Below are positions 1,166 through 56,745 of a stretch of DNA of 64,000 nt, piece by piece. Below the pieces are notes generated by a model. The model saw only the letters and a list, made by a program, of their open reading frames with translations, made no database searches and had not been told where the DNA came from. Numbering within the stretch: the stretch's first letter is position 1; the number at the start of each line of letters is the position of its first letter. Where the stretch lies: assembly GCA_964187785.1 (NCBI GenBank), contig OZ076417.1, positions 34,968,001 to 35,032,000 on the forward strand, given 5' to 3'. The translations under genes and the position numbers were made by a program. The DNA comes from Amphiscolops sp. MND2022 (Eukaryota).

Positions 1166-1599
1166 TTTGATATGAGATAATGGTGAAATGAAAACTATAG
1201 GATGAAATTTGAAGGTAGGAAAAAAAGCAGAAATGGATTTTGGTTTCGAAGTTATGTTAGGCAGTATTGCAAATGAATGACTGGTTAAACCAGTAACCGA
1301 AACTTCTGCAAACATTGAAAGATTTCAACTAAAGGGAAAGTCACCTTTGCTCACGATCCCTTCGCGTTTTTTCAAACTTAAATTGGCTTTGATGCATTAC
1401 TTGCTTTCTTTACTGAACACGCAGACACATTAACAACCTTTTTCGAGCTAACAATTAATTAGAACCCTAATTACTGACAAGTGAGATCAACAATTTCTCT
1501 TTGTTCAGCTATTGCTATCGAACCGTGAATCAGAACCTCGCTGCTTCTCAGCCACTTCTTTATATTTCATTTGGGTCAACTTCAAATTGTAAGTATGAC

Positions 1600-2760: not shown

Positions 2761-3152
2761 TATGCTAAACTACCATTTGTTTGATTTGTTACACTTTATC
2801 ATGTTTTGATCCTCCAGTATGTCAGATGACTCTCATCCTTTTGTGGTAAGCTATATATAGTCCGCTAATTTGAAGATAACGCGTGAACAGTTTCTAACTA
2901 CACTTGCCAAAAGAAAACGCTACTCTCTCCTGATTCTGTGGTCAACCATAGTCCGTGAAAAGTCACGTTTAGTTCGTAATTTGCAATTTTGTGCTACCTA
3001 GTTGAGTAATTGCTCGTTTATTTATCATTTCTCGTTGGAACTTAGTTTGATTTTAATTCATTGTCACTTTTGCTACTTCATTGCTCTTTGTGCAAGGCTT
3101 TCGAGACATACTTATCCGAACTCTCTGTACTCAAGGTAAGGTTGCAAAGCAA

Positions 3153-6890: not shown

Positions 6891-7790
6891 TTAAACTGTA
6901 AGAAAACAACTACCAAAGAGGGTAGTACGTCAAAATTGTAAAATCTAATATATCTTAATTTTGTCAAGGGAAATTTGTTCAACTTTCAATGACGTTTTAG
7001 AATATTCTGACATTCATATATATCTGGCTTAATATTGAAATCTGGCCGATTTTGATGAAAAGGTATATTTTCGAATGATTGGCAATTTTAGAGGCCGGCT
7101 TTTGTTTGCTCGAAAGGTATTATGGACATATTTTGTCTCTGACTTCTAAGAGCAACAAATTTTGGCTAAAATGCAATTAAAAAGTGAAACTAATTATGAC
7201 TAATTTTGGTCACAATCGTGAGTACTTTTTTACTCACGATTGGGACCAAAATATCACAGAATCTTTTTTCATTTTAGTATACTGAAAGGCCTCCTTTTTG
7301 TCCTCACGAAAGATTTTAGGAAAATATTTAACTCTGTATTCTATTAACAACGAAATTTGGCTAAAGAAGTTCTAGTCGCACGAAAACACTGAAAACATTA
7401 GCAACGAATATTTGTCTCTTTGACTTGTAATAAACACGAAATTCGTCTCAAAAGTCCTAGTCTCACGAAAACACTGATCAATCTTGCATGGCATTTTATG
7501 AAAACGTGGCATTTATTTAAAACTGTCTTGTCGTCAAAATATGGCAAATGTTTATCAACTGCCATTTTTCCATAAACATTCAACGGATGAGTTCGTTCTT
7601 GGATGGTCCTAAAACGACTGTGGAAAGTAAGACGATATCTTTATACATGTGTCGTGGAAACCACATACGTATCCTAAACTGTTAGAAAACAACTACAAAA
7701 GGTAGTACGTCGATATGTAAGTTTTAATATACCGTTTTAGTGTCATGGAAGTATTGCTCAATTTCGAATGACATTTTAGAATATTCTGAC
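6885..7790 (+). repeat. R1 array
   Basis: R1 core at ~6897 and ~7620, palindrome at ~7204. Abuts the ATG at 7791. Confidence 0.9.
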
Positions 7791-10700
7791 ATGTCTGATC
7801 GGGCTTGCTCATCGCAGTCACAAGAAGTGACCTGTGAGAAATGTGGGCAATTGTTGCCGAACAATAAAAGCAAGAACGAAGCACCGTCATACAAGAAGTA
7901 CAGAAAAAGCCCGACCAACCTAATTTCTTGTACCAATGGCACCTGTGATTATGTCACTGATCGGTTGTTCAGCCTCCAGCGTCATGAGAAGCAGTGTCCA
8001 GGGATGCCCTATGAGGACTGGAAGAAAAACGAAGTGACATGTGAGAATTGTGGACAGTTATTCACTAATAAGAAAAGTCGGATGCGTCATCAAAAGAACG
8101 CTAAATACTGTGTCAAGCAGAAAGCCAAGATTGATGCCGGCATAGAAGTGTCCATGTACAAATATCGTAAGTTATTTAACATTACTGAAGTCATTGAGTT
8201 TTTCGCTCGAATACTTATGATCTGGAAAATTAAAAAGGACCGTGTGTGGGCGGGGGTTTGGGAGGGGGATTAACAAAAAAGATCCATATCAAAATGCTTA
8301 CACATCTTTGTGTTTACACATGATGTTTTCCAGCAGCTGCAAAAGGTCGTCATAAAAGTCCTCATAATTGTCTGAGTTGTGGCAAGTTGTTCGCGTACCA
8401 GTACGTACTCCGGAATCACGTCGCAAGATCACTATCTTGCCAAGTAGCCCTAGCTCCAATTCCTGTTGATGTCACTTTCTCAGAGTATCCCCTATCTCCT
8501 TTTGGTACCACAGGGTACTTCGAATTTTGCGAGAGAATTCCTCTGGAATGTGGGTTTTCTTTCGACGAGTGGCAGGGTCCTCAGGAGAATCCAAGTGTGC
8601 ACTTAGGCTCTCTGTTGCAACACGGCATACCTCTGCTTTGGAAAGGTGGTGCAAATCACTGTCCCGGTATAAAGCTTCCCAAAGTTGACAGGAGTGCGCA
8701 TTTTCCCAGTGAAGTCCAGCAACTCCTGATGGCATCAAATTTGACTGATCCGGAGCAACAACTAGATGTGAAATCGGCAAAGATTGGCACTGTAAGCTTT
8801 TCATTATCTTTTCGCAAAAATACTGTTTCTTTTTAAAAGCCAAATTGTCTCGATTATTGGATTCATGTAGTGTTTTATCTATCATTATTTTCATCTTTCA
8901 CCATGATTATTATTTCACAAAAAATATTCATTACCTCTCTCCAATAAAACGATATGAATACTTCCTAGTTTCAGACGCAATCTCTATCCATACCGGAGTT
9001 CGTGGATGCTTTGAATTCATGTGGCCCCGATGACGTGAATTATCCATTGAATGTTATCGATATCAGGATTAAGCCAAAAGTGAGTTGGGAAACTTGATGA
9101 AAGAATAACCTCTTTTTTCAACTATTTTCATTTTTTTCAAATTAAGTTTTTGTGTTTAAGAAGCTGTACACAGTCCCAAAGATGGTAAGAGACAATTCCA
9201 TTGGGCACCTGGTTGAAAAACTCATTGGGAAGAATAGTCTCGAGCCTTATTCATGTGCCACTTCATATTATCTGCTGATTACGCAGGACTCAGCGCACAC
9301 AACTTGGCACCAAGACTTTTCAGCAACTTCTGTTTGCTATACTGTTCTTCGTGGCGAGAAAAGTTTTTTCTTGGTCAAGCCAACAAAAAAGAATATGGCA
9401 ATATTCGAGAAATGGTCAGATGCAGAAAATGACCAAACGTAAGATTTTTTTATTGAAACTAACGAAGAGTTTATAAAATTTACAAGAGTTTATTATAAAA
9501 TTAAAAATCAATTCTTTTGAACGAAACAATGGACACCTATAACTACAGAAACAGTGCATAAAAACTATTTTTGATTTATTTTGATGTTTTAGGCCCACAT
9601 TCTTCGGTGCGATCAATGAACTGGAAGAAGGATGCCTCCGACTCACTGTTACACCCAGTGACATTCTAGTTATGCCTGCCAACTACCTTCATTTTGTCCT
9701 CACGAAAGGTATTATGGTCTTCTTTAGTCTCTTTGAGTTATGAAAGATGTGTCAGTCGGTCTTTTTTGTAAATCGCTTTTACGTACACTTGACTAATTCT
9801 AAACGATTTTAGCTGACGATCACTTTCTAGTGTTTGATTCATTTTTTGTAACTTTGGCGTTTTTTCTGGTTATGGCACGATGCATAACTTTGCCACAACT
9901 TCATTCTTTCTTTTTCACTCGGCAGTGACAATACTCGTTTGCATGTTTTCCGCGTTCAATTTACACTTTCTCGCGATTTGATTGGTCCGTTTTTTCTCGC
10001 CAATACCGTCCGTTTAATCCGTTTGTTAACTTGTCTTCTACATTTACGGTGAACCAATCTTTGAATAATTCCTCAGATTGAATGATTGATCCTTTACATT
10101 AGGAAGGATGCCTTGACAAATAGTCAGCTATTCCCAGAGTTCTCCCCGGTGTTTGTACAATATGAAAATTGTACGGCAAAAGCCGATCTAATTTACATAA
10201 TTTACATGTCTACCACAACAGCTAATAATTATAATTAGTTTATGGAATAGTTCATTCCGAAATCTGTTAAAAATCGAGATGCGTACGAAATTGTTTTCCA
10301 GATATCATTTTCACACTGTTGGAGGACCGCGCCCAGTCCATTTTTGCTAGCGTTTGATAAACTGCCATTTTCTTAGATTGACATACAACGAATGAGCTCA
10401 TTCTTGAATGGTCCTAAAACAACTGTGGAAAGTAAGACCATATCATTATACATGTGTCGTGGAAACCGCTTACATATCTTTAACTGTAAGAAGACAACTA
10501 CTAAAGGGGGATGGATGGTTGTACGTCAAATTTTAAGTTTTAATGTACCGTTCTGGTGTCATGGAAATATTTTTCAATTTCGAATGGCATTTTGAAATAA
10601 TCTGGCATTTATTAATATCTGGTTAATCATTGAAATCTGGCAGAGTCCGTTAAAGTCTGACTTGCAATAACAAAAACATTGACTCAAAACTAATTTATAA

Positions 10701-11468: not shown

Positions 11469-12366
11469 CTGTTTTTATTCACCTTTATTCTATTTATTTT
11501 CAAATTTGTCATTTAACAGAGTTTCTAGTTTTTTTTATATTTTGAAAGTTTAAATATAAGAAAGCGCAAATTAGAAAACGAAATGTGAATCCATTGAATT
11601 CACAAATTACCACATTTTCATTTCTGAATGGGACAAAAATAAGAAACGAGCAATCTGTTACTGTTGACGTTCAATCTTATTCTGTCTGAATGAGAAAAAT
11701 TGGCAAATGTATCTTTATTGGCAAAACTCAACGGAATGGGAAAAACTGAAATACTAAAATTCTCATACTATTTACTTGGTAAATATGTACTAGGAACAGT
11801 TTTTTCGGCACTTTACTTCTACTTTTTGGCGCCGTTTGTGTCACGAAATTCCCATTTTTGGCATTTTTCGACAACTTCGCAAAAAACAAGTAACAAGTCA
11901 TAAATTTGCAATTGAAAATCACAAATTCACATTGTTTTTTACAAAAAAAACTTGTTCAGAGTGTTTTTCGTCATGTTAGGCCGATCAGCCTCGAATGCAT
12001 TCAGGATAGAAAGAAACTAAAAAGATTGTCATTCACCACATGGTCTCAATACAATTTACAGTTGCTATCGAACTATCATTGTTTTCAACGTTAGTCAAGC
12101 TCTAGCTATAACAACCTCACAAAGGCGTAAATATCTATCTGCGAAGGGTCTGAAATACTTTTAACACAAACTTGTGGGAAAAACAGTAACACGCTAAACA
12201 ACCCGCCTAAAGATTCAAAAGAAGTTGAGCAGAAGATTTCAATTGGGGATAGCACAAAATACAGTAAACAACACATTCTTTGAGTCACATTTTCTTTACT
12301 CTATAACACACTATGAAATCGAGTTTGTAGAGGTACAGGACGTTGAGTTTGTCATAAAATTTTCAT

Positions 12367-14895
12367 TCATTGTAAACTGGTTTGATATAAGGATCGATAA
12401 CTATTCGAACACTTGAAGTGACCACGACATGCTACGAAGCTACATCGAATCATGAAAAACCCGAATTCACGATGTTCAGTGAACCTCAAAATTTTGATGA
12501 AGGCATCTTCACCTTCTTTGTTACTTGCGATCACGTCCCATCGTTTCCCAAGCACACTGTCCCATGACTGATTAGACCCTTTGAGGTCATTGCTGATATC
12601 CCCAGAAAACTTCACTGTTTCTTTTGAGGACGTCGTTTCAAAACCACACATTTTACGGGTCAACGGCGTCGCTGGAATTAATGATTTTGTCATTGAATGT
12701 TTTTTCTGGGCAAATCCAACCATCCTTTTGACTGCTGAAAACACCGCGAAAGCTTGGTTAATAGGATGAACTAGAGTGTGGATATTGAATTCTTCTATTT
12801 CGTCATCGATAACTTGAACTTCTAGTGCGGGCATGCGTACTTCAAAATCGGGGTTTGTTTCTCCTATCATTTTAACAAACGCCTTTCGTTTGCTGCAATC
12901 AAAGAACAGTTCTTTTACCTCAAACGTCGCGTTTGCATAGTTGGTGAGAGACCCAACGTTCAGGATGTTGTTATAGCATGGCGCATACTTCAACTCAACG
13001 TTCTCGTCACTGTGTGGTATCAAAGATATTGCATCCACAAAAGGTATTGTTTTTGGGGGGGCATCGCTTTTTTGGTACGGGAGGCCTGGAATCGACTATG
13101 GTTGGAGGTGATTCAAGTTCTTCGTTGGTGTCATCTGGAGCAGCCTCATCAGGCAAGTTTGCCCGTAATTGTCGATAAGAGACAAAAAATTCTTTTCCTT
13201 CGTCATCAACGACCATGCACTGTCGCAGGAACGGATCGTTGATCATCACTGTCGCAGTAACAACTGATCCGCAGCAAGTAATCTCGCAATTTTCGAAGTC
13301 GTCGATACAGTCACAATCTTCGTCATTTGATTGCCAAAAGAAAACTTCGTCATTGCGCATTAACTTCCTTGGATTGAAAGGCAAGCTTCTACCCCTTTTC
13401 TTGCTCAGCGATTCATCCAGTTTTTGGGCTTTTCTAATATTCCAACGTCGCTGAAAAAAGTTGAAAGTTAGCTCTCGCTTTTCAAATTTTTATCAACTTC
13501 AATAATGGGTTTTTTGAAAAAAATATTGTGGAGAATATCAACACGTGGATTGTCATTGAAATCTGGCAGATTTTGCTGAACTGCCATTTTTTCCTAAACA
13601 TTCAACGAATGAGCTTGTTCTTAAATGGTCCTAAAACGATTGTGGAAAGTAAGACCATATCTTTATACATGTGTCGTGGAAACCGCATACATATCTTAAG
13701 CTACAAGAAAACCATTACCAAAGGGGATAGATAGTACGTCAATATTTAAATCTGACTGTATTGTCCTGGTTTCCACCACTTTAAGCATATTGTCCTGGTT
13801 TCCACCAAAATAGCATTCACTGTTCGATGGCCACGAAAGCTACTGTGGAAAGTAAGACCATATCATTATACATGTGTCGTGGAAACCGCATACATATCTT
13901 AAACTGAAAGGAAACAAATACCAAAGGGGGTAAGTACGTCAATATTTAAAATCTAATATACCGTATTAGTGTAATGGAGCAATGACTCAATTTTGAATGG
14001 CGTTTTTTGGAATATTCTGGCAATTATTCATATCTGGCCTAATATTGAAATCTGGCAGATTTGGATAAAATGATACATTTTTGATTGATTAGCAATTTTA
14101 GAGGCCGGCTTTTGTTCGCTCGGAAGATATTATGGACATATTTTCAAAATAGTATGGAGCTAAGACAAGTTGTCTCTCTGACTTCTAATAGCAGCAAAGT
14201 TTGGCTAAAAATGCAAATCAAAAGTGAAATTAATCACGACTTATTTTGGTCCCAATCGTGAGTAATTTTTTTACTCACGATTGGGACCAAAATATCACAA
14301 AATCTTTTTAATTGGAATCATGATTTAACTTTCATTTTTTGAATTTCCATGAATGGAAGTAGAACTTCTCAATTTTTGATGTTAAATGCTAGCCCTATAA
14401 ATAGTATGTCAAGGTTTAAATCTCACTTTTCTGTCTTGCCCTCAGAAATTTTGATTTTTTTGTTTGGCATTTTCTAATATTTTGGCATTTTCGAATATCT
14501 GGCTTGTCGTCTAAATTTTGCAAACTTCGTTAAACTTCCGGTTTCTAGTTAGTTCACTCCAACGAATGAGCGTAGCGAGTTATTCAATTTATAATTCGAT
14601 TTGTGTATTTTTTGTCCTCGAAACCTGTTTAGCATTTCATCGGAACTATGGCCTAAGAAATAAGAGAATTGTGGAAAAGATTTCGAAAAAAGTTTTGAAA
14701 TGTTATATCAACCTCATCTTCCCTGTCGATTTCTGGCACTGTTATGTCAACTGTTTTTCTCGTAGCCCACTCCATCCATTTGATTCTGACACTCCAGTCA
14801 CTCATGATTGCAGTGACTTTTGCAAGCTCCCAAATAAATGTTAGAGGGTCCAGGATATGGACCACTTCGTTCGTTTCGAACTTTTGAAGAAGCAT
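12367..14895 (-). CDS. Multi-Tudor/Royal-family-like protein, 2 exons, one frameshift
   Basis: Exon 1 14895-14713 (FETNEVVHILD..WELAKVTAI..SVRIKWMEW; resembles the PHF20-type Tudor pattern) ends GAG|GTTGAT and joins in phase 0 to ttttttcag|CGA at 13450. A second barrel-like unit follows (ATVMINDP..CMVVDDEGKEFFVSYRQLR). A 1-nt shift in a C7/A5 run at ~13050 links ORF 13007..13384 to ORF 12367..13038. Confidence 0.55.
13530..14330 (+). repeat. R1 array inside the Tudor-like gene intron
   Basis: Two R1 cores (~13640, ~13845) and a palindrome at ~14243. Confidence 0.9.
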
Positions 14896-14959
14896 TACTG
14901 CGTTTAAAGGTGAATAGTTTGAGACTGACTGGAATAGTCACCTTATCAATAATTCAATT

Positions 14960-15300
14960 GACATCCACTGGGGAAATAAAGAGATATTCCAATTCCTGCG
15001 TCAATTTCAAAGCTGGGGCAAAATGACGCCGCTTATAATTGAAGTAGAGGCGATGCTTAATTACTGTTGGTGCTCAGATCTAATGAACACCCACTGGGAA
15101 AGTAAAGTAGGGCAATTGGGGGCATATTCAATTGGGGCGGCAAGTTGACACCGCTTATGATGAGGCGGCAAGTTGAAACTGTTTAGGATTGAAGTAGGGA
15201 CGATGCTTACTGTTTATCCTAAGGTTCAATTAATACTCACCTTTAAAATTAATCAAGAGATCTTTGGGGCATTTCAACGCCGCCTATAACTTAAAAAAGA
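14960..15300. promoter_or_regulatory. Candidate bidirectional promoter with repeated GC-rich motifs
   Basis: Lies between divergent starts 14895(-) and 15453(+). Motif (g)acgccgcttata recurs at ~15026, ~15147 and ~15276, and ttgaagtag.g.cgatgctta at ~15038 and ~15189. Confidence 0.35.
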
Positions 15301-15452
15301 TGACGCTCAATTTTGGTTGATAGCAATTGTTTGATAAAGATTTGCTCAGTTTCTTTCAAACCATTTTCACGATCAGTAGCTTCCAGTCTTCTCGAATATA
15401 CATCACACTTCCTTTCAAATTTTTGAATTGCTTGGTTGTAACTAAATAACTA

Positions 15453-18400
15453 ATGAATAATTCAAATTCCCAAAAGCAAACTCCTGCTCCTGATCCACCA
15501 TTGTCCTACTCATCTGTTCTAAGTAATTTCTCGACTCCATTGACAAACTTGACCACATGGTTGATCGAATCCTCAACTCCTTTGCTCAGCGGAAGTTCAG
15601 AAACTTCTTTGACAAATTCGAAACCCTCATTCGATGCAACAGTCTACTCGCAGAGCTCGCAGACAGTCTACACGCAGAGCTCGCAGAGCTCGATTACTTA
15701 CAATGTAGACGGGATTATGCAAGAAGAGCATCACGAGCCAAATCAGTCAGTCGAAGATCACGCGGTAACTCCTTCTCCTACTCTTGGCATTTCCAATTCC
15801 GTGGGTTTAACAAGCACCACAATTCCGACCTCAAGCCAGAAACAACTTGTTGACTCTTTTGAAGGAAGAGTCTACAATGCAGTCAGAACAACTCCCCCTG
15901 CAAAAAAATGCAAACCAGACTTGAAGACGGATGAAGCCAAAGAATGGCTAAAATCCTTCATAGTTGCCATTACGAGCCGTTACAAAAAGAATGTTAGCGC
16001 CCCAAAGAAGACCCAGATAAACTTTTCCAGAAGTCTGGTGGCCTACCTGTTTTTGTTTGTTGGCGTTGCTGGCATTTTGGACAAGGAAATCAGCAATATC
16101 ACTGTCCACGAGTTGGCTCAAGCCGTGGTACAAATGAAAGACTACCCTGATGATGAAGACATACCATTTTCCGTCGAGCCAAATGAAAGTAAGTAATTAT
16201 GCATAACCTAAACCCTTAACCTCTACAGTCTTTTTTGACCTTTTCGAACACTTGATGAAATTCAAAGTAGCTATCAATTTTGAATGATCCAAACAACAAT
16301 TAGATATATTGTCCTGGTTTCCACCATCTTGAGCTGAATTTGAACATTGTAAACGCCGCGACCAGGCCGCCCAAATTTTGTCCCCTGTGTCCCCAACCAT
16401 CATGACATGTAATAGCAACGAATATTTGTCTCTTTGACTTGTAATAAACACGAAATTCGTCTCAAAAGTCCTAGTCTCACGAAAACACTGATCAATCTTG
16501 CATGGCATTTTATGAAAACATGGCATTTATCCATAACTGTCTTGTCATTAGAATTTGGCAGATTTTGATGAACTGCCATTTTTCCGTAAATATTCAACGG
16601 ATGAGTTCGTTCTTAAATGGTCCCAAAACGACTGTGGAAAGTAAGACGATATCTTTATACATGTGTCGTGGAAACCGCATACATATCTTAAGCTGTAAGA
16701 AAACAACTACCAAAGGAGTAGTATGTCAATATTTAAATCTGACTGTATTGTCCTGGTTTCCACCACTCTAGGCATATTGTCCTGGTTTCCACCAAAATAG
16801 CCTTCATTGCTCAATGGCCACGAAAGCGACCGTGGAAAGTAAGACCATATCTTTATACATGTGTCGTGGAAACCGAATACATATCTTAAACTGTAAGAAA
16901 ACAACTACCAAAGGGGATAGTACGTCAATATTTAAAACCGTATTAACCGTCAAATGGTCATGGAAATATTGTTCAGTGTTGAATGGCGTTGTAGAATAAC
17001 ATGTCATTTAATATTATTTGGCTTGTCATCAAAATCTGGCAAATTTTGTTTAGGTGTGTTTAGATTTTCGATTGGTTAGAGTTCTTAGAGGCCAAAATGT
17101 TCTGGGCCTATTTTGTCTTTCTGACTAATAAAAATTTTTGAAAAAACTGAAAACTCGAAACTAACTTACAAGTTGAATAGATGTCTTTTTTTGCAGATTC
17201 TGTTTCTCGAGTACAATACAAGCCACCACGCTGGCTAATCGAAGGTTTGGTTGAGTATGCCAGCCACACGAGACCTGACTTTCTCAGCAAAACCGAAGGT
17301 GTGAAATTTCAACGATGTGTCAACGAAAGTGATGACCGACCAGTCGTGACAGAGCTCCTGTTCGTCAATTCTGTTGGGAAGTCTTGTTTTAGACCGAGCC
17401 ATGTTGTCGACCAGTATTTGATCCCTGTACGTTTGTTTTTTTTTGTCATTTAAATTTATATATAGTTCGGAGTTTTCAAAACAACTTCGATTGAAAAATC
17501 TACATCTACTAAACCATTGTAGTTCTAGTGCAAAAGATCAAAGATTTATTCGAAAGCATGTGTTTCAGGTACTTCAACAATGTAAAAAACCAGCCAATCA
17601 GCTGAAGTTCAAATTGGAACTCATCTATCCAATTGTTGACGACCCTGAAGCACGATTGCCAAAATTGAAAAATCAAATCAAGGAAGTGCAAGGAAAATTT
17701 GGCAATGAATTTGACCAGGATACCATCAAAACATGCGTGAGAAAGCATCAAGATGCTCAACGATACGCACGACAGTCAGCTCGAGCCACAACGTTCTTCA
17801 AATGCATGAACGGGAAATGTGACTTGAACATCTTGGAGAAAAGAATCGAAGGATTTTTCCAGAGGCAGAAATGGACAACACCAGAAGACGTCAAACAGGA
17901 TATTAGAAAAGTGTTTCTGTTGGTTCTACCTATGCTACAAAATCCAGATTCGAGAAGGATGGGCAGTGATGGTTCTGCTAAAATAATTTACAAAGGGATG
18001 GCACATAACATGGATTTCGAGTGCCAGACCGTCCTATTCGAACGATGTGACACGCAGAGCTGGCCAGGCGTATGTCCAGCCACTTTCAAATCTTATGGAC
18101 GCGGAGTGGTCAGCACACAGAAGTTTTTTAAAAACGAGATTGTTCTTGACTACCACGGTCAAATACTTGAGAAAATGACATTTACACAAGCTCTGGCGAT
18201 GGAAGGCGTACAGCCCGAGTATCTGATGGAGGTACGTAATCTAAAGTTTAAAGTTTTTTGTTAGATACATACCAAGTGAATAAAGACAAATAAAAATAGA
18301 TCTAAAAAGTCAAAGTATGAGTATTTGTTCTTTTATCAATTTTGGACCTAGAGAGCTAAAAGTGAAGAAGAAAAAAATTATTAGTTCACTAGGACCTAGC

Positions 18401-19403
18401 TAAAAGAAAGTACACGAAACTTTTTTGTGCTTAATACGATCTTTTTCTAAGTTGATAATTTTTTGTATATTTCCATTTTTTTTTCATTATTCGCTCTGAC
18501 GTAAACTCTACCGATTCTTCAAGAATTCAAATTTCTATCTTTTTTGTTACAATAATCCATTTTAGTCAAATTGGCGTTTGAATTCAATTTGGCGTTTTGA
18601 GATAAAATAGCACGTTAAGTAATTTCAGCAGAATTTTCACTATTTACACACTCGTTGAATACTGTCAATACGCGTCTAGTTGTATTTCGCTTACCGCTCT
18701 GGCTTTCTCGCAATTTGATTGGCTCGCTTCGTTTCAAACGTTTTGAAGTTCGTCAATAACGTTTTTCTAATCCGCCTGTGAATTCTTCTACTACGTTTAT
18801 AGTAAACCTATCTCTAAACATCTCTTCTAATTTTATAGATGTTCCATTACAATGGGATGGATGCCTTGATGAATAGTCCGCCATTCCCAGCGTTCGCCCC
18901 GGAGTTTGTACCACATTAAACTTATATGGTAATAGACGATCTATTCAACGTGTTAAACGGCTTGATGTCGTTTTATTTGCACTCAGAACGCTTTGTAAAG
19001 CCTTGTGATCAAATACGACTCCAAATTGTGTACCGCATACATAATTTTTGAAATGATCCCACGACAGCTAGTAACTCCAATTCATTTTTGGATTATTTCA
19101 TTCAAATTCTGTTAAAAATTGTGGGTTTTTGTAAGGTGTTCCTGTAACTTCTTTGTTCCAGGTGAAAGGTCCGGGCGGAGACTGATCAACGCTTCCTCCG
19201 AGATATGTGAAAGTCACCCAAAAAATCTATGTTTGGGACGCCTTATTAACCACTGTTCCAAAGATGCAAACATAAAGCAAACTGACATAGTGCTTTATGA
19301 CGAGTCCCGAGTTTGCTGCTTCAGGGCTATAAGAGATATAAGCCCTTTCGAAGAATTGAAATTCGATTACGAGGACCCAACAGCGCGGTCCCTTTTTTCG
19401 TGA
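15453..19403 (+). CDS. Ser/Thr-rich N-terminus + degenerate tyrosine-recombinase-like region + SET domain (SETD8/PR-Set7-like), 4 exons, one frameshift
   Basis: Exons 15453-16188, 17197-17426 (phase-1 join is exact), ~17473-18231 (acceptor uncertain) and 19162-19403. SET motifs GRGVVST, LDYHG, LGRLINHC and EELKFDY are all present, with no post-SET cysteines, as in SETD8. One base is missing near 19175 (ccgggcgg); one extra G restores EVKGPGRRLINAS. Confidence 0.8.
16300..17100 (+). repeat. R1 array inside SET gene intron 1
   Basis: R1 cores at ~16630 and ~16830. 16400-17100 is closely matched by ~59200-59830. Confidence 0.9.
18560..19110 (+). repeat. R2 dispersed repeat inside SET gene intron 3
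   Basis: Collinear similarity to 9780-10330. Confidence 0.7.
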
Positions 19404-19589
19404 AAGGTGACTTGCTGACAAATATCTTCCTGTGCTTTTTCAAGAGTCTATTTATTCCAAACACTTTTTTTTGTTTTTTAAAGCTACTCGTTTTGTTCAC
19501 TTTTCGAATAATTATCAGATATATATGAACCAGACTTTCAACCAGAGGATCAGAATACATGTAAGTTCAGTCAATTATCCATAGCACCC

Positions 19590-20250
19590 TTTGTCCTGGT
19601 TTCCACCAAAATAGCATTCACTGTTCGATGGCCACGAAAGCGACTGTGGAAAGTAAGACCATATCTTTATACATGTGTCGTGGAAACCGCATACACATCT
19701 TAAACTGTAAGAAAACAACTACCAAAGGGGATGATAGATAGTACGTCAATATTTAAATTTGACTGTATTGTCCTGGTTTCCACCACTCTAAGCATATTGT
19801 CCTGGTTTCCACCAAAATAGCATTCACTGTTCGATGGCCACGAAAGCTACTGTGGAAAGTCAGACCATATCATTATACATGTGTCGTGGAAACCGCATAA
19901 ATATCTTAAACTGTAAGAAAACAACTACCAAAGGGGGTAGTACGTCAATATGTAACTTTTAATATACCGTAGTAGTGTCATGGAAATATTGCTCAATTTT
20001 GAATGACGTTTTAGAAAATTTTGGCATTTCAAAAAACTGGCTTGTCATCGAAATCTGGAATATTCCTTTAATCTTCAGTTTTTCGACTACTTTACTTTAA
20101 CGAATGAGCTTCGTGTTACGTCCATAATTATATCAGTTCGTATTGGCTTGGTTTTAAAATATTTTAGTCACGAAAATAGGGATTCCACGTCACGTAAAGA
20201 GAAGGTTGTTAATTATTTATTCAAGAGCATCTTTTTATTATGGTGTTAAA
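19590..20250 (+). repeat. R1 array plus tail
   Basis: R1 cores at ~19640 and ~19850. Tail 20050-20250 is inverted relative to 3835-4020. Confidence 0.85.
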
Positions 20251-20338
20251 TGTCCCTCTTTTTGTTAACGTGTCGGTTCTTCTTAACTCCTAATCTCAAC
20301 TTTTTTCATCAAAGCGTCATTCTGCAAATATATTTCAG

Positions 20339-23300
20339 ATAGTCACTGTGACCTTCATACATCTTCATCACTAGTTGAGTTGAATACAACGTTGTTGAAA
20401 TCTCATATCAACGCACTTTTGATGGACCCCTTAGCACTTTGGAATGCCCATTCTGTACAAGTCGACAAAAATTTGCTGTTTATCGACTGCAAAATGTTCG
20501 AAGTCATGGCCGAGAAACGATTCACCAACAAATACAGAAAATTCGAAAAGATCATTGACGATGCATTCGCCGGGTGTGGGTTGAATACCAAAGACTTACT
20601 CCGGAGAATTCCCATGAAAGGTCAAAGCAAACCGACTGTGTGTATAGCAGTGAGTAATTTTTTTTCTAATCATCATTTTTTGCAAATGTCTATCTTTGTC
20701 ATATTTGGCGCGATAATACTTTTTTCTAATTCGTGCTTCGCTGGCGTTTTGTATCCAATTCGTTAATTGAGTGTTTCGCTTCAAAGTCGGTTAAAAATCT
20801 GGATGCGTACGCAATTGGTTTTCAATTGTTTTCTTCATTGTGTTGTAATACCGCCCCTAATCCTTGTTTGCTTGCATCGCAAATGATTCGCAACATGCGG
20901 TTTCTTTTATATTGCTAAAAATACATTTACTAAATACATTACTAAAACATTTACATATCCACCACAAAAACCGTTTCCGAAAAAATATTCTTTACCGGGA
21001 AAAATTGCGATGTTTCTAATCTTCCGAGGGTTCAAGGATTTCCAATGGACCGACGCAAGGAAGAGATTTGTGGAATGCTTTGTCCCTCGATATTTGATTC
21101 CTTACGAAGATACTTTCAATTTTCCTCCTCTTGTAACACCAACCTTGAATCCCCTTGCAATACGTACCTCGAATCTGTCTGCGCCACCAACAATGGTCCT
21201 TGAAACAATGGATTCACATACACCACCAACAATGGTCCTTGAAACAATAAATTCGTTTGCAACACGAAGAATGGACCTTGGAACAATGGATTCGCATACA
21301 CCACCAACAATGATCCTTGAAACAATAAATTCAATTGCAACACCAACAATGGACCTTGGAATAATGGTTTCGCATGCACCACCAACAATGGACCTTGAAA
21401 CAATGGATTCCCATGCACCACCAACAATGGACCTTGAAACAATAGATTCGCATGCGCCACCAACAATGGACCTTGAAACAATGGATTCGCATGCACCACC
21501 AACAATGGACCTTGAAACAATGGATTCCCATGCACCACCAACAATGGACCTTCAAACAATGGATTCGCATGCACCACCAACAATGGACCTTGAAACAATG
21601 GATTCGCATGCACCACCAACAGTGGACCTTGAAACAATGGATTCGCATGCACCACCAACAATGTACCTTGATGCAGCGACAAGTCCAAATCCTAAAATGA
21701 GGAGAACAAAAAAATTGAACAAAGAAGCAGCCACTTGTTTCTGGAAAAGGGTCATCGATGAGGCCAACGATAATAAAGAAATTGGGTTCAATGAGTTTAT
21801 AGAACAAGTGAAAGACAATATGATTAAACGGAAATACCAGGGATTCACAAAGAAGGAAGAAGAGAATGTGGTGAAAATTCTAATCGAGCGTCTTTTTGAG
21901 AATCGAGGATCGACCAAGGAAATCAGTCACATTCTATCACTTACTGCTCAAACTGGAAATATAGAGGAAGTCATAAAACTTATCAGATCGAAACTTTCGG
22001 TAGTTGGCTTGGGATACAACGTAGTACCCTGTATACGCTTGATCAAGAAATCGACAGCTGAAATCCAGACCTATTTTGTTTCACTATGCCATCCCGAAAG
22101 AACGTTCTCCGGTTTCCGATGCGATCTGATAAAATTTGTTGAGCTGGCCGCATACCTGCTCGGAATGTATGATTTATGTGGTTTGAGAATTGATATCTGG
22201 GGCGACGGTTGTGAAATTGGAGGCCTGGAAACAACCCGTTTTGCCTTTCGAGTGTTTTCGGAAAAAATTAGTTGCCAGTCATCAAGTTCGGTGTTCTGTT
22301 TTGCATCGTATCGAGGAAAAGACAGCCGATTCGCGATGGAACAGAACCTTGGACCAACTATAGCTGGTGATCAAAGTTCGGGTTGGCTCTACCAGAAAAC
22401 GTCGGAGTTGTCAGATCGTGGAGTTAAACTAACCTACAGTGGAGATACACCAGTTTTGCTACGCCTGATACTGGGAATTTCCTGTGAAACGAATTTCAAA
22501 TCAAAAATGCCACTTCATATTCCTGATAATAGCTTTTTGCCAACAAATTGCCACCCTGAAACAGGTCTGAGAACCGATCTCAAGATACCTTTCCGAGAAG
22601 AACTGCCAAAAACATCCCTTGTTTATTTCCAAGACGTGCGATGTATATGCCCTGACCCGACGCACATGATCACCAGATGTGTTGAAAACGACTTGAGGAG
22701 AGTGGCGCAGAAAATAATCACTGACAAGTATCCCGATTATGGCCCCTCACTCAAAGCCTTTGAAGAAAATCTTACACGACGTGATGCAAAAAGGCCATAT
22801 TTCCAGTTCAATGTGAACACAAAACTAGGTTCTGGTGTTGGTACTGTAAACAGTGTGTCATTAGCCGGAAGTAATGCCCTATCTATTATAGCAGAAAAAG
22901 AGGAATTGGCTGGCGCAAATGATTGTTCAATAGGGAATCTTTTTGAAGATGTATGGGATCCCAAAAACGATGTTGTTATTGGGAGTGAATCTGCTGCTAG
23001 TGCACAAATACTAAAACAACTTCTCCCAGAACTTTTCGATAAGCCTCACCCTAGTGACAAGACATCCGCCAATCTCTACATGTCGAAGACAGATGCATGT
23101 GAATTGCTGCGCTCCAGCCTGAACCGCTGTGCAATTCTCTTGAGATCTGAGCAGTTTGACGCCCAATGCTACAAAAAATGGGCTGAAATATATTATCAGA
23201 CAACCATTTTGTTATTTGGTGAATGCTCATTGACACTATATAAGTTGAAGCTCGCAATGATGCCACAGATTGTAGAAGGAGGGTTTGTGGAAAGACCTTT

Positions 23301-24387
23301 TGACCACATGTGCGAAGGGCTTGAAAAATCCAATCATCACGCAAATCGCTATTTCCAGACAAAAACCATGCGTGGTGGCTTACCATAAAGATCCTCTTTT
23401 CCTGAAATTGTCATCTTCATTTGGAAAGTTCCTCCGTGCATCAATTGAATTGAAAACAAAGAAGTATGAATGTTTGGAAATATCTGAAATACTTGAGAAA
23501 CTTGTTGATGATTTGGATGCCAAATACCCCGGACCAACATACCTCGAAATTTGCAAGACCCCAATTTCCTCGACTTCTCTTGCAATCGGGAAGTCGCATC
23601 CCGATTCTCAATTTTTGAGTGGTATGAGGTTCTTTTCAATTGGAAGATTAGGTGTAGTCGATAGGTGTAGTAGATTTCGTTAACGAAGGATGTTCTGATT
23701 AAACTCATCAACGAAATGGGGGGCATATTCATTGAACACGATCAAGCAAGCAGACACCCTCATGAAGACACATTCACGACTGCCTAATTGCTTCGTTCTG
23801 GTCAAAGACGAAGAAGACCTAGTAATCGCCACAGGCGCTGTGCAAGAAATTGAAGACCTGAAAAAGAAAAGGCCGCTGGCGAAAAAAATAAAGCGAAGTA
23901 AGTCAAGTCTTTCCACGTCCCAGTCTTCAGATTCGGACAGTCAATACCCATCATCGCAATTCACAGCAAGACAGAAAAAGAAACCGCTCAATACTCACAA
24001 ATTGCTCAAAAATTTGCCCAAGGAGGTCTAACTTTTTTGAAGAAAAATTTTCTCATGGATGTCAAAAAAGTAGTTACGTTGTTAGACCCCAAAGATTACA
24101 CCATTGCCCCCGGAAGTAATTTTCGTCGAGCCAGAGTAAATGATATGAGACCACTCTTCCTTGATCAAATATCAGGCAAAAAATCAAATGAGAATATATC
24201 GGCTGTGGCTTATCTCAAACGATACAGAAATGGACAAATAGATTACCAAAACTCTTTTTCGAGAATGATGATGACACTTTTGCCGGAAAAATTGACAACA
24301 TTGATGATGATGACGACGACGTCGATGAAGAATGTTCTCAGATCACTTTGTAGACTCCAGAGTTCAACAAAAAATGGGACACCGTAA
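20339..24387 (+). CDS. RAG1/Transib-like DDE transposase-fold protein with 13-aa repeats and a frameshifted C-terminal BRCT-like domain
   Basis: Exon ~20339-20649 (donor GTGAGT), then the 792-aa ORF 21010..23388. Motifs align by eye to RAG1 core: IWGDG (ESCDG, D600), YSGDT (GYDEK, D708), PDPTH (IDALH), LYKLKLAMMP (NYFHKTLAHVP), CEGLEKSNH (SEGNESGNK, E962). Downstream frames give LSGMRFFSIG..LTKDVLIKLINEMGG..CFVLV..FLKKNFLMDV..LLDPKDY (BRCT-like), with about 4 frameshifts after 23385. Confidence 0.65.
21184..21672 (+). repeat. Coding minisatellite, 39-bp unit x ~12.5 (PPTMDLETMDSHA)
   Basis: Twelve full in-frame units plus one partial in ORF 21010..23388. Confidence 0.95.
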
Positions 24388-24639: not shown

Positions 24640-27490
24640 TGGAGTTAACCAAAATCTGCCAGTTTTTATTTAAGAGCAAAACAATAAAAAATGCCACAAA
24701 TTTACCAAACTCCATTCAAAAATGAACAATAGTTCCATGACACTAATACGGTATTTTAAAATTTACATATTGAAATATTATCTCTGGTAGTTGTTTTCTT
24801 ACAGTTTAAATTATGTATGCGGTCTCCACGACCCATGTATAATGATATGGTCTTACTTTCCACAGTAGCTTTCGTGGCCATCGAACAGTGAATGCTCTTT
24901 TGGTGGACACCAGGACAATATGCTTAAAGTGGTGGAAACCAGGACAATACAGTCAGATTTAAATATTGACGTACTATCTTACCTTTGGTAGTTGTTTTCT
25001 TACAGTTTAAGATATGTATGCGGTTTCCACGACACATGTTTAAAAATATGGTCTTACTTTACATTGTCGTTTTGGGGCCATTTTAAAAACGAACTCATCC
25101 GTTGAATGTTTACGGAAAAATGACAGTTCATCAAAATCTGCCATAATTTAATGACAAGACAGTTATGGATAAATGCCATGTTTTCATAAAATGCCATGCA
25201 AGATTGATCAGTTGTTTCGTGAGACTAGGATTTTTGAGACGAATTTCGTGTTTATTACAAGTCAAAGAGACAAATATTCGTTGCTAACAGTCTCGCAGCG
25301 CCTTGTTAAAGGGCCCAAAGACTAATAACAGAACTAATGATCTGTCTAGTTAAAGAGAGATTTGATGAGTGAATACTTTCAACTGACGCAACTGTATTTT
25401 ACGTTTAGACCATATCGCGAATGATCTTTCACTCTTTTTCTTTTTCTACGGTTGTTTTTACTAACAATCTGCTAGCGATCTCGAGGTTTGTTCTAGAGCT
25501 AGCCTTTTGCCACATGGACCAAATTTAGTCATCAATAATTTCACGTTTGAATTGCATTTTTAGTCAAAAGTTGTTGCTATTAAAAGTCAGAGACAAAATA
25601 AGTCCATTATATCTTTCGAGCGAACGATTCCCGGCCTCTAAAAACGCTAACCAATCAAAAATGTACCATTTCATCAAAATCTGCCAGATTTCAATAACAA
25701 GTCAGATATAAATGAATGTCAGAATATTCTAAAACGTCATTCAAAGTTGAGCAAAATTTCCATGACAATATTAAGGTATATTAGATTTTAAATATTGACG
25801 TACTATATCCCCTTTGGTAGTTGTTTTCTTACAGTTTAAGATATGTATGCGGTTTCCACGACACATGTATAATGATATGGTCTTACTTTCCACAGTAGCT
25901 TTCGTGGCCATCGAACAGTGAATGCTATTTTGGTGGAAACCAGGACAATATGCTTAAAGTGGTGGAAACCAGGACAATACAGTCAGATTTAAATATTGAC
26001 GTACTATCCCCTTTGGTAGTTGTTTTCTCACAGTTTAAGATATGTATGCGGTTTCCAGGACACATGTATAATGATATGGTCTTACTTTCCAAAGTTGTTT
26101 TCATGGCCATCGAACAGTGAATGCTATTTTGGTGGAAACCAGTACAAAATGCTTAAAGTGGTGGAAACCAGGACAATACAGTCAGATTTGCATAATAACG
26201 TACTACCCTTTGGTAATGGTTTTCTTGTAGTTTAAGATATGTATGTGGTTTCCATGACACATGTATAAAGATATCGTCTTACTTTCCACAGTCGTTTTAG
26301 GACCATCCGAGAACGAACTCATCCGTTGATTGTTTATGGAAAAATGGCAGTTGAAAAAAATTTGCCATATTTCGATGACAAGACAGTTTCAAATAAATGC
26401 CACGTTCCCAAAAAATGCCATGCAGAAATGTTTTCAGTGTTTTCGTGTGACTAGGACTTCTTTAGCCAAATTTCGTCGTTATTAGAATACAGAGTTAAAA
26501 TATGTCCCTAATATCTTTCGTGAGGAAAAAAAAGAGGGCTTTCAGTATACTAAAATGAAAAAAGATTGTTACATTTTTATCCCAATCGAGAGTAAAAAAA
26601 TATTCACGAATGAATAATTTCACTTTTGAATTGCATTTTTAGTCAAATTTCGTTGTTATTAGAAGTCAGACAGTTAAAATATGTCCTTAATATCTTTCGT
26701 GAGGACAAAAGGGAGGCCGTTCAGTATACTAAAATGAAAAAAATTTTGTGATATTTTGGTCCCAATCGTGAGTAAAAAAATTACTCACGATTGGGACCAA
26801 AACTATTTGTGATTAATTTCACCTTTGAACTACTTTTTCAGCCAAAATTCGTTGCTATTAGAAGTTAGAGAGACAAAAAGTGTCCTCAATATCTTTCGTG
26901 CGGACAAAAGCCGGCCTCTAAATTGCTGACTATTCGAAAATGTACCATTTTATCAAAATCGGCCAGATTTCAATTTTAAGGCAGATATCAATAAATGCCA
27001 GAATATTCTAAAACGCCAATCAAAATTGAGTGATTGTTCCATGACACTAATACGGTATATTAAGATTTAAATTTTGACATATACTCCCTCTGGTAGTTGT
27101 TTTCTTACAGTTTAAGATATGTATGCGGATTCCACGACACATGTATAAAGATATGGTCCTACTTTCCATTGTCGTTTTAGTACCATTCAAGAACTAGCTC
27201 ATTCGTTAAATGCTTTTGAAAAACAGGCAGTTGACAAAAATTTGCTAAATTTTGATGACGAGGTAGTTATAAATATATGCCATGTTTTCTTAAAATGCCG
27301 TGCAAAACTGTTTCTGTGTTTTGGTGAGACCAAGACCTTTTTAGCCGAAATTCGTGAAATGCTATTGGAAAATGGCAGTTGATAAAAATCTGCCACGTTT
27401 TGACAAAAAGACAATTCTGAATAAATGCCTTTTTTTATAAATTGCTTGCAAACTTGTTTTCAATGTTTTGTTTTCATTAGACTAGGACTT
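24640..27490 (-). repeat. Large R1 array in reverse orientation
   Basis: At least six reverse R1 cores (~24830, 25030, 25870, 26070, 26270, 27150) and a palindrome at ~26756. ~24700-25800 is an inverted copy of ~58450-59500. Confidence 0.9.
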
Positions 27491-27589
27491 TGTTAGCCAA
27501 ATTTACTGGCTCTAGTTTTACTTTTTGTCCGCTTCCAAAGCTTCTCTGTTGGCTAACGCCCTCTTTTTGAAAAACACGAATATTTGTGT

Positions 27590-28720
27590 TATATAATATT
27601 TATTTTCCTCTCTCTGCGCGTTTCTCTCTCTACGGTAACTCAAACAATTTAGAGCTTTGTACAGAAAATGACTGTATATGAAAAAATTAATTGATCATTT
27701 AAATACAAAAATATATATATATATCAAAAGAACGAATCAACAAATCAATAAGTTTCATCTGTTGAAGCAGTGAAAGAGTGGCTCGAGAGGGCTTATAATA
27801 TCTTCTTTGGGTTTCTGCTGTACTGGATTTGATTTGAGGGGTACTGGTTGTGTTTAGAGCTGAGCCCTAAAAGGCTTAACATGAAGATTATTGTTCGGTC
27901 TCCAGATGTCATCGAAAATGATCTCTTCATCGTACGTGTTTTTTCGTGTAACTTCGTACTTTGTTTTCCCGTTGGGGTAGAACACTTGGCAGTAGTAGCA
28001 AAACCCAACTTTGCGTGGGGTATGCGACTTTCCATGTAACTTATTAACTGCGTTTTCGCCGTTTTGTGAGATGAGTTTATCCATTGAAGCAAGAAGCGAA
28101 AATGAGTACAGATGTATGAATTGTGGAGAGAGACTGGGTGCAGAAGAGGGTTTGCGGAGAGACCGAGTATAGATTACCTGGTAAGAGAGACTGATTGATG
28201 GCAGAATGAGAACAGAAGGAGGAGAGAGACTGAATGATGACAAAAAGAATAGAGACTGGATCGTTTGAGTTTGTTTGGCAACAATGAAAGAAATGTAATT
28301 GAAAGCCAAAGTTTTTGGTTAACCCTTATTGGTTGAAATACTGCTTTGATGTCAGAATAAAATTCGAATAAAGTGTTTGGTTCTAATTACTTGATTATAA
28401 ATGGCTTTTACCCTGCCGTCTTTTTCAAAGGTAATTGTATTTTGTCTGTAATTGCGCAAAATGCCCCCTCCCCAAGCGACCGCAGGGGAAATAAGGTTTA
28501 ATTCTGACTGTATTGTCCTGGTTTCCACCAAAATAGCATTCACTGTTCGATGGCCACGAAAGCGACTGTGGAAAGTAAGAACATATATTTATACATGTGT
28601 CTTGGAAACCGCATACATATCTTAAACTGTAAGAAAACAACTACCAAAGGAGGTAGTACGTCAATATGTAAATTTTGATATACCGTATTAGTGTCATGGA
28701 AAAATTGCTCAAGTTTGAAA
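27590..28720 (+). repeat. Right inverted-repeat arm
   Basis: Reverse complement of ~4090-5430, e.g. ttcctctctctgcgcgtttctctctctacggtaactcaa versus ttgagttaccgtagagagaaacgcgcagagagaggaa. Confidence 0.85.
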
Positions 28721-56432: not shown

Positions 56433-56745
56433 CATTAGAGTGCACAGGCAAGCCTTATTTGCTCAAAGCGCAACATAGTGCGTTCAATACCTCGGATTCC
56501 ACGACCATACCTTTAACCGTGCAAAATTGGCAAATTACGTCATTTGTCCCGGATTCCACGGATTTAGTCGTGGATTCCAGTAACAAATGCTTAGCTGTAC
56601 GAACTGTCGGCATGCAGCGGTGTCCCGGATTCCACAAAAACGTAAGTTTTGCGAAATGAACCAATCAGATTGCAGAAATCATAAATTTCCTGGATTCCAC
56701 GACTTTATGCTTGACGCGATACGCGGCATCTCTCCTTTAATTAAA
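56433..56745 (-). mobile_element. Partial second copy of the gtggaatcc MITE
   Basis: Reverse complement of ~36940-37257, including the TIR cattagagtgcacaggcaag. Confidence 0.85.

Follow-up and report, generated by a model that had tools for sequence, protein, structure and literature searches.

A decayed transposase gene of a giant, high-copy DNA transposon in the marine animal Amphiscolops sp. MND2022, with a predicted RAG1-like fold, no RAG1-type zinc site and a BRCT domain

The gene examined here is a broken copy of the transposase gene of a very abundant giant DNA transposon, whose enzyme is predicted to have the fold of RAG1, the antibody-gene recombinase, but lacks the zinc site of RAG1 and carries a BRCT domain. 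It lies on the forward strand at 20422-24387 of the window, i.e., the whole 64,000-nucleotide stretch analyzed (contig OZ076417.1, positions 34,968,001 to 35,032,000, assembly GCA_964187785.1), and consists of two exons, with a main ORF of 792 aa. We regard it as a copy of a distinct, apparently undescribed transposon lineage with a RAG1-like fold. The features of the window that bear on this reading are the following:

20422..20651 (+), exon 1, the conserved N-terminal region of the transposase, with ATG at 20422 and a GTGAGT donor after 20651, both read in the sequence; a tblastn search with residues 17-73 of P0012, an intronless homolog, hits 20479-20649
21010..23388 (+), main open frame of this copy (792 aa), cut short by a frameshift; in intact copies it runs on for about 1170 aa
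21180..21671 (+), 39-bp tandem repeat (12.6 units) coding a 13-aa repeat in the N-terminal linker, its unit number varying between copies
21691..23379 (+), catalytic core with the predicted RAG1 fold, equal to residues 189-751 of the intact sibling P0001
22192..22206 (+), DIWGD on predicted strand beta-1; both Asp are invariant and one of them is the first catalytic Asp
22444..22446 (+), second catalytic Asp (SGD), directly after predicted strand beta-4
22654..22665 (+), DxxH motif (DPTH), whose His is invariant in 25 of 25 members
23314..23325 (+), EGLE, with two invariant Glu, the second of which (23323) is the proposed catalytic Glu
23379..24239 (+), stretch with five frame-breaking indels relative to the intact copy L007: an 8-nt deletion at 23379, an 8-nt insertion at 23665, a 4-nt insertion at 23743, and 1-nt deletions at 23974 and 24239
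23612..24100 (+), BRCT domain, split by a variable low-complexity linker and read across frames in this copy
24100..24387 (+), conserved C-terminal tail (V-D-x-RPL...Q motif, then an acidic end)
15453..19403 (+), partner gene with a SET domain, kept next to the transposase in distant relatives
12367..13038 (-), partner gene of unknown function; relatives have a Tudor/Agenet-like N-terminus, and it is conserved in L031, L032 and L033, three loci holding relatives
7740..8273 (+), C2H2 zinc-finger ORF of the element, also found near the relative in L032
36817..37257 (+), 441-bp non-autonomous element (MITE) with both termini of the family, flanked by G runs
56433..56461 (+), 5' terminus (CATTAGAGTGCACAGGCAAGCC...) of the next full-length copy, whose transposase lies beyond the window end

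The initial annotation had described D, D, H and E motifs in RAG1-like order, the absence of both halves of the RAG1 zinc site and a BRCT-like tail, and these observations are confirmed. The three catalytic codons it placed at 22204, 22444 and 23323 correspond respectively to the second D of DIWGDG, the D of YSGDTP and the second E of CEGLEKSNHH, with the DxxH motif (CPDPTH, about 22654-22665) lying between them. Lack of conservation of the acidic residues among homologs had been specified in advance as an outcome that would overturn the proposal, and the opposite was found: among 25 members at 34-95% identity, D168, D172, D252, H325, E542 and E545 (numbering of P0001 189-821) are invariant, while D322 is kept in 24. 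The annotation needs nevertheless two corrections, as the ORF of the window is not intact, stopping at 23388 because of the 8-nt deletion and being followed by four more frame-breaking indels, so that the BRCT part is read only across frames, and as the gene also has the upstream exon, joined across an intron.

The likeness to RAG1 and Transib could not be seen by any sequence method. Pfam searches at E up to 1 and searches of PDB chains at E up to 10, with single proteins and profiles, the latter including a full profile and one of the motif region, linked the core to no Pfam family, including RAG1 (PF12940) and the CACTA transposase families, and to no solved structure, weak hits to a designed TPR protein and a phycobilisome linker being due to chance. 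PF12940 found nothing in the genome of the window, and no true Transib or RAGL was available there for a profile-profile comparison. Structure, nonetheless, bears the likeness out. The comparison with RAG1, ProtoRAG and Transib that the annotation had called for, with the absence of an RNase-H fold named as grounds for rejection, was carried out on an AlphaFold model of the core (pLDDT 77, pTM 0.75), whose predicted strand order is beta1-beta2-beta3-alpha-beta4, with D on beta1 and D after beta4. The 42 best Foldseek hits in the PDB are all RAG1 or HzTransib chains (best E 4e-6), and VIA-align aligns model residues 73-598 to RAG1 460-1007, i.e., over the whole RAG1 core (DDBD/pre-RNase-H/RNase-H/insertion/C-terminal domain), with Z 16.9 and 407 aligned residues at an rmsd of 4.4 A. 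The amphioxus ProtoRAG protein BbRAGL scores Z 15.2 and HzTransib Z 14.7, whereas P element (9.6), ISCth4 (8.8) and Hermes (7.6) come next, and a hAT, P-element or ISCth4 type was therefore set aside (Z 6-9.6 against 15-17). The likeness thus rests on a predicted structure, in which the helix carrying the proposed catalytic Glu is modeled with low confidence (pLDDT 42-47), and no residue-level superposition on D600/D708/E962, nor an alignment to C727/C730/H937/H942, was made. The EG-x-E-x-x-N...R-x-F stretch around E962 of mouse RAG1 and the Y/F-x-K-x-L-A-x-x-P stretch before it look alike to those of the present family, which is a lead rather than a test. Overall, the interpretation of the initial annotation, a distinct branch of the RAG1/Transib superfamily and the likely mobilizer of the gene cluster, is supported, although the latter at family level only.

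Whether zinc-site loss and the BRCT domain extend to the whole family, a question the annotation had put to collected homologs, was answered positively for both. The C2H2 zinc module of RAG1 and Transib, with CxxC after the second D and H(3-4)H before the E, is absent in the 25 diverse members, in which no conserved Cys pair or His pair exists, only scattered, non-homologous occurrences being found in single sequences, and the LYKLKLAMMP stretch has no His in any member. Following the core, a split BRCT domain occurs family-wide, interrupted by a long variable linker before the last strand and helix. Pfam BRCT/BRCT_2 hits were found in 11 of 28 members, all weak (best E 1e-4, below the curated cut-off where bit scores were shown) but all at the same position, and all leading Foldseek hits of a C-terminal model (pLDDT 81) are BRCT domains, although with E of 8e-3 or weaker because of the inserted linker (TM 0.60-0.73 relative to the target, probability about 1). 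The fold is that of the single BRCT domains of repair scaffolds such as XRCC1, DNA ligase III/IV, PARP1, REV1 and BRCA1, while here it is attached to a transposase and its binding partner is unknown.

The family is abundant in the 1.07-Gb genome. Out of 1276 first-look candidates, 70 copies were scored, at 64-100% identity (68 of them 86% or more), many with uninterrupted frames of 1118-1253 aa, and at least 70 near-full copies exist elsewhere, including many intact ORFs of ~1170 aa; a further search with 16 kb of DNA gave too many candidates to be scored. Four copies on different chromosomes are 98-99.7% identical over at least 28 kb and diverge right after ...GTGCACTGTAATG, and this 3' terminus lies about 8.06 kb past the core start in at least 12 copies. 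The termini, which the annotation had asked to be defined together with the target duplications, are 5'-CATTACAGTGCAC...GTGCACTGTAATG-3', and 590 + 579 of them, about 1,170 ends, were found in the genome against 0 in the control. They are shared by MITEs of about 440 bp, at least 38 of which are exact-ended. In short elements, 18 of 18 paired ends share the flanking dinucleotide but only 3 of 18 share a third base, indicating duplications of 2 bp, not the 5 bp of Transib/RAG, which places the lineage outside Transib/RAG proper. Both ends plus duplication were seen only for short elements, while for full-length copies the 5' end was seen once, at 56433 of the window next to an assembly gap; since flanks further upstream, needed for the 5' ends of four full-length copies, were not examined, whole-element length, probably 35-43 kb, rests on the two copies of the window. 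No convincing inverted termini were detected in L031, a 10.4-kb relative whose contig is probably shorter than the element. The neighboring genes are co-amplified with the transposase as one TIR-bounded unit, and SET-domain, Tudor-like and zinc-finger genes travel with it in distant relatives, although the ESM Atlas gave nothing for the partner protein of unknown function. The only other nuclease-like ORF, a retroelement-type integrase fragment, is missing from the copy of the window, so it is not a core part. The dN/dS ratio is 0.31-0.43 between subfamilies and about 1 within the subfamily of the window.

In light of these results, the stretch is best explained, with a probability of roughly 0.8, as a decayed copy of the transposase gene of a high-copy, giant cut-and-paste DNA transposon, whose intact protein of about 1170-1250 aa comprises a conserved N-terminal region, a variable 13-aa repeat linker, a roughly 530-aa core with the multi-domain RAG1/Transib fold around an RNase-H-like DDE center, a BRCT domain and a conserved tail. 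We consider as demonstrated by the analysis the fold, the invariance of the acidic residues and of the DxxH histidine, the family-wide absence of the C2H2 zinc motifs, the BRCT fold, the inverted termini, the 2-bp target duplications of the short derivatives, a recent amplification with copies 99% identical over at least 28 kb and many open frames, and purifying selection between subfamilies. Its mode of action is instead inferred: the protein would bind the CATTACAGTGCAC... termini as a dimer, which was not modeled, cut them by the nick-then-hairpin chemistry of RAG1, Transib and hAT enzymes and insert with a 2-bp stagger, thereby moving the full elements with their SET-domain, Tudor-like and zinc-finger passenger or helper genes as well as the ~440-bp MITEs, while the BRCT domain may recruit host end-joining or repair factors or mediate subunit contacts. 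No RNA data holding the gene were found and expression is thus untested, but the copy in the window, being a pseudogene, cannot make the protein and could only be moved in trans.

As compared to RAG1, BbRAGL and HzTransib, the family shares the whole core architecture, but has no detectable sequence similarity to them, no C727/C730 + H937/H942-type zinc site, 2-bp rather than 5-bp duplications, an added BRCT domain and a 35-43-kb element carrying several other genes, and no RAG2-like partner was found in a search that was not exhaustive. Its termini start CATTACAGTG, not CAC(A/G); an ACAGTG word lies 4 nt inside the end, which may be chance, and does not settle the matter of a heptamer-like terminus in either direction. 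With the CMCT clade (EnSpm/CACTA, Mirage, Chapaev, Transib, Plavaka, ESTA, Lanisha; Kojima, 2025, PMC12730594) it shares a DDE transposase, 5'-CA..TG-3' termini and duplications in the 2-5 bp range, and large elements with kb-scale repeated subterminal regions recall CACTA elements; it nonetheless lacks the C(2)C and H(3-4)H motifs given as common to all these lineages, and has a BRCT domain and no Chapa or RING domain.

It is possible, although unlikely, that the family is an ordinary member of an already named CMC/CMCT lineage, for example Mirage, which also makes 2-bp duplications, Chapaev3 or an animal EnSpm group, its novelty being only apparent as similarity to Repbase and Dfam entries was not measured. 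The termini and the duplication length fall within those listed for the CMCT clade, Chapaev has already been placed with Transib (Kapitonov and Koonin, 2015), and AlphaFold DB holds many unnamed eukaryotic proteins of similar fold. This reading contrasts with the absence of the zinc motifs in all 25 members tested, with the lack of a Chapa zinc finger, a RING or any Cys/His-rich domain at the N-terminus of full-length members and with the lack of Pfam hits to CACTA transposases; moreover, no paper was found to link Transib with a BRCT-bearing transposase, or to describe a transposase with both BRCT and SET domains.

Much less likely, the protein is not the transposase and serves another role, such as repair or chromatin targeting through BRCT, the element being moved by another enzyme, since it carries several other conserved genes of unknown role. 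A tyrosine-recombinase-like part of the SET gene would be one candidate, but this domain is apparently dead and Pfam finds nothing there, inverted termini with short target duplications and MITE derivatives are the mark of DDE cut-and-paste and not of tyrosine recombinases, and the acidic triad is invariant and under purifying selection. A host gene family or a segmental duplication appears to be the least probable alternative. Long, near-identical multi-gene blocks can also arise by segmental duplication, and two copies lie about 70 kb apart on the same chromosome; however, copies lie on at least 13 chromosomes and end at exactly the same base with unrelated flanks, hundreds of short derivatives have the same ends and 2-bp duplications, and decay within a subfamily is neutral.

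RAG1 is the best-studied domesticated transposase, and its relatives are used to reconstruct how V(D)J recombination arose. The full RAG1 core fold in the absence of detectable sequence similarity and of a zinc module widens the known structural family and shows that the zinc site is not indispensable for the fold, while the added repair-type BRCT domain suggests a transposase that talks directly to the break-repair machinery of the host, a role that in V(D)J recombination falls to separate factors. The constant linkage to SET-domain and reader-like genes raises a testable idea about chromatin-guided transposition, and the presence of many intact, nearly identical copies and abundant MITEs in one genome makes the system open to experiment, and one that could yield a new large-cargo transposon tool. 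More tentatively, and with somewhat less than even odds, the family may be a superfamily-level, so far undescribed lineage that has dispensed with the zinc module thought universal in the CACTA-Mirage-Chapaev-Transib-RAG1 group, has gained a BRCT domain, and travels, still active in a marine animal, in 35-43-kb elements together with its own chromatin toolkit, i.e., a SET-domain methyltransferase-like gene, a Tudor/Agenet-like gene, zinc-finger genes and, in one subfamily, JmjC. That would be a second, independent coupling of a RAG1-type recombinase to chromatin, beside the PHD finger of RAG2, and a natural test of what the RAG1 zinc site is for.

The genome examined, 1.07 Gb in size, is AT-rich and eukaryotic, and small shares of the stretch occur in marine metagenome runs. 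On the + strand an ORF of 792 aa was recognized, whose N-terminal part holds a tandem repeat and which is preceded by an upstream exon coding a region contiguous with the rest of the protein in intronless relatives. The initial annotation had proposed a RAG1/Transib-like DDE protein and named three catalytic codons; this observation held, and each of the three codons is what it was said to be. The features of the gene are:

20422-20651 (+), upstream exon, with the ATG at 20422 and a GTGAGT donor after 20651
21010-23388 (+), the 792-aa ORF
21180-21671 (+), 39-bp tandem repeat coding a 13-aa unit
22204 (+), codon of the second Asp of DIWGDG
22444 (+), codon of the Asp of YSGDTP
23323 (+), codon of the second Glu of CEGLEKSNHH

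The 13-aa repeat (DSHAPPTMDLETM-like), which lies in the transposase linker, varies in unit number between copies, giving open frames of 1118 to 1253 aa. The copy in the window is broken: compared with an intact sibling (locus L007, one uninterrupted frame of 1170 aa) it has five frame-breaking indels, namely an 8-nt deletion at 23379, which ends the ORF, an 8-nt insertion at 23665, a 4-nt insertion at 23743, and 1-nt deletions at 23974 and 24239. Moreover, an inverted copy of a 5'-region piece of the element (27575-28516, -) follows this transposase copy where the normal 3' region should be, and the window's copy is therefore rearranged or truncated downstream of about 25286.

The core belongs to a large, live-looking family. 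A search of an index of 5.8 billion proteins returned 42 homologs, none with a name or a Pfam domain, while a core profile found 473 clusters (50% identity level) at E 1e-3 or better, 166 of them at 1e-30 or better. These derive from several unrelated assemblies and metagenomes (ERZ25074608, ERZ27286575, ERZ21818094, a Logan run and JGI). In the window's own genome a first look gave 1276 candidates, and all 70 that were scored were near-full-length, at 64-100% identity (68 of them 86% or more), many with open frames of 1118-1253 aa. Between the two main subfamilies dN/dS is 0.31-0.43, whereas within the window's subfamily it is about 1, the usual picture of a transposon whose master copies are under selection while inserted copies decay.

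No sequence method connected the core to anything known, neither in Pfam nor in the PDB searched with a single sequence, a full profile and a profile of the 109 most conserved columns, and the Pfam RAG1 model found nothing in this genome. Structure prediction and comparison with RAG1, ProtoRAG and Transib, which the initial annotation had itself set as a check of its reading, gave a different picture. An AlphaFold2 model of the core of the intact sibling (protein P0001, residues 189-821, 95% identical to the window, built from a 19-row alignment) has pLDDT 77 and pTM 0.75. Foldseek against the PDB returned RAG1 or HzTransib chains at ranks 1-42 (best E 4e-6, alignments of about 650-720 columns), followed by BbRAGL at rank 46. 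The VIA-align scores were as follows:

VIA-align comparison of the predicted core with solved structures
RAG1: Z 16.9 (407 residues, rmsd 4.4 A, model 73-598 on RAG1 460-1007)
BbRAGL: Z 15.2
HzTransib: Z 14.7 (392 of 480 residues)
P element: Z 9.6 (the next family)
ISCth4: Z 8.8
Hermes: Z 7.6

The gap of 5-7 Z units, together with coverage of nearly the entire RAG1 core apart from the nonamer-binding domain, makes this more than a shared RNase-H fold, and the proposed likeness to RAG1/Transib is supported by the predicted structure. The helix with E542/E545 is however modelled at pLDDT 42-47, and no residue-level superposition was obtained. The predicted strands run beta1 (166-176, holding D168 and D172), beta2, beta3, helix and beta4 (246-250), followed at once by D252, which is the canonical placement.

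Whether the acidic residues are kept in homologs had likewise been named in advance as a point that could overturn the reading, and they are indeed kept: in 25 members down to 34% identity D168, G171, D172, D211, D252, H325, R329, E332, H539, E542, E545, H549, R561 and G563-G564 are invariant, and D322 of the DxxH motif is kept in 24 of 25. The zinc module of RAG1 is formed by C727/C730 and H937/H942 (PMC4914335), and the CxxC and H(3-4)H motifs are reported as shared by all CACTA-Mirage-Chapaev-Transib lineages (PMC12730594). None of the 25 members has these at conserved positions, and only sporadic, non-homologous occurrences were found, so that the absence of the zinc site, which the initial annotation had noticed in this copy and suggested testing across the family, extends to the members examined. 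The YKLKL-x-x-x-P stretch, in which the initial annotation had noted the absence of a His pair, has Lys and hydrophobic residues where the two His of mouse RAG1 lie, although this alignment is a lead rather than a test.

The BRCT-like tail, whose family-wide presence was to be tested as well, was recovered in relatives. After the core, all 23 aligned C-termini share the pattern L-x-G-M/L-R-F...G...LGG...C-Y/F-V-V, then a variable low-complexity linker, then F-A-x-G-D-F-x-F...Y-I...LDP. Pfam BRCT or BRCT_2 hits fall there in 4 of 19 and in 7 of 9 members (best E 1e-4), although those whose bit scores were shown lie below the curated cut-offs. A model of this part (pLDDT 81) has only BRCT domains among its leading Foldseek hits (XRCC1, ligase III, BRCA1, PARP1, REV1, ligase IV and TopBP1), with a probability of about 1 and a TM by target of 0.60-0.73, but with E of 8e-3 or weaker because the linker splits the domain. 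In the literature searched, no paper links Transib with BRCT in a transposase, or a transposase with both BRCT and SET domains. A divergent subfamily (members P0065, P0066, P0069, P0075, P0077, P0081 and P0086 of alignment A4) has an extra C-terminal stretch that resembles an HMG box to the eye, which Pfam does not confirm.

Copies of the element on chromosomes 1, 13 and 11 are 99.4-99.7% identical over at least 28 kb, and the copy on chromosome 7 is 97-99% identical. Their common 3' boundary is exact, ending ...GGCTTGCCTGTGCACTGTAATG with unrelated flanks beyond it, and this terminus lies about 8.06 kb past the start of the core in at least 12 copies. The inverse sequence, CATTA(C/G)AGTGCACAGGCAAGCC, marks a 5' end at window 56433, where about 2 kb of continuous homology plus further patches up to about 7 kb match the 3' region in inverted order and then join the upstream part of the element; the same arrangement is seen at window 911-3141. 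The element therefore has kb-scale inverted ends, rich in a sub-repeat of roughly 450 bp, and spans roughly 35-43 kb. The sub-repeat is also scattered in both orientations between the element's genes (4070-4452, 13617-14068, 16608-17052, 19628-20029, 24689-25157, 25648-26484 and others, counting those in the end regions), and it may hold binding sites for an accessory protein, as in CACTA elements.

A derivative of 441 bp with both ends lies at 36817-37257. Directly after this MITE comes a block (37260-44000) with G+C of 0.41-0.49 and strong G-over-C and T-over-A skew, in which no tandem repeat and no Rfam match were found and whose nature was not identified. The genome has at least 38 such MITEs with exact ends, and 590 + 579 termini in total, against 0 in the reversed-pattern control. 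The definition of termini and target site duplications had also been proposed as a check, and pairing + and - strand termini by coordinates gave 18 short elements of 0.2-2.9 kb. In all 18 the two flanking bases are the same on both sides (AA, TT, TA or AT), while a third base agrees in only 3 of 18. Since the search pattern allowed mostly A/T flanks, chance agreement of two bases is about 1 in 4 per pair. The duplication is therefore 2 bp, not the 5 bp of Transib, ProtoRAG and RAG.

The 10-kb upstream flanks of other copies are colinear with window 12112-21700, and the neighboring genes therefore belong to the element. In a relative from another organism (locus L031) and in relatives sharing 41-44% transposase identity (loci L032 and L033) the same partners recur in varying order: a SET-domain gene (L031 and L032), a gene of unknown function matching window 12367-13038 (all three) and two zinc-finger ORFs (L032). 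The partners and other ORFs of the neighborhood were located as follows:

SET-domain gene: window 15453-19403 (+); L031 1614-2873 (-); L032 13242-14329 (-)
gene of unknown function: window 12367-13038 (-); L016 613-1731 (-); L031 8743-10101; L032 7333-8843 (-); L033 6393-7937 (-)
JmjC-domain ORF: L033 14975-15556 (-)
retroelement remains: L019 8129-9831 (-); L020 8164-9999 (-)

The SET-domain gene sits next to the transposase of predicted RAG1 fold in three distant subfamilies, in different orientations, and looks like a fixed partner rather than a chance capture. The gene of unknown function has no Pfam family, its structure was not predicted, and in relatives it carries a Tudor/Agenet-like N-terminal stretch that is only weakly supported (Agenet E 0.015). 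The JmjC-domain ORF (25.8 bits, cut-off 24) lies 3 kb from the transposase of one subfamily and is another chromatin-type gene in the neighborhood. The retroelement remains comprise an integrase with an H2C2 zinc domain nested inside the chromosome-1-type element and an RT/RNase H ORF just outside its 3' end; since the integrase-like fragment of the chromosome-1-type copies is absent from the window's copy, it is a nested insertion.

In the most likely view of how the system works, the protein is the DDE transposase of the element. While the observations on its sequence, relatives and termini come from the analyses, its mode of action is entirely inferred: by analogy with RAG1/Transib it should act as a dimer on the two termini, nick, form hairpins on the flanking DNA, and integrate with a 2-bp stagger. 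The BRCT domain probably couples cleavage or gap repair to host repair factors, or contributes to assembly, and the accessory genes may bind the sub-terminal repeats or chromatin; these roles, too, are inferred.

By function and predicted fold the protein is a RAG1/Transib-like enzyme, but it lacks three features that define Transib/RAG, i.e., the zinc module, the 5-bp duplication and detectable sequence similarity. It fits the broader CMCT clade in its termini and duplication length, although it lacks the motifs shared by that clade; Mirage also makes 2-bp duplications and, Repbase not having been searched, a link to it is not excluded. We regard the family as an enzyme of an already known type that departs from Transib/RAG in these three respects, and consider it possible, although somewhat less likely than not, that it represents a new lineage at the superfamily level.
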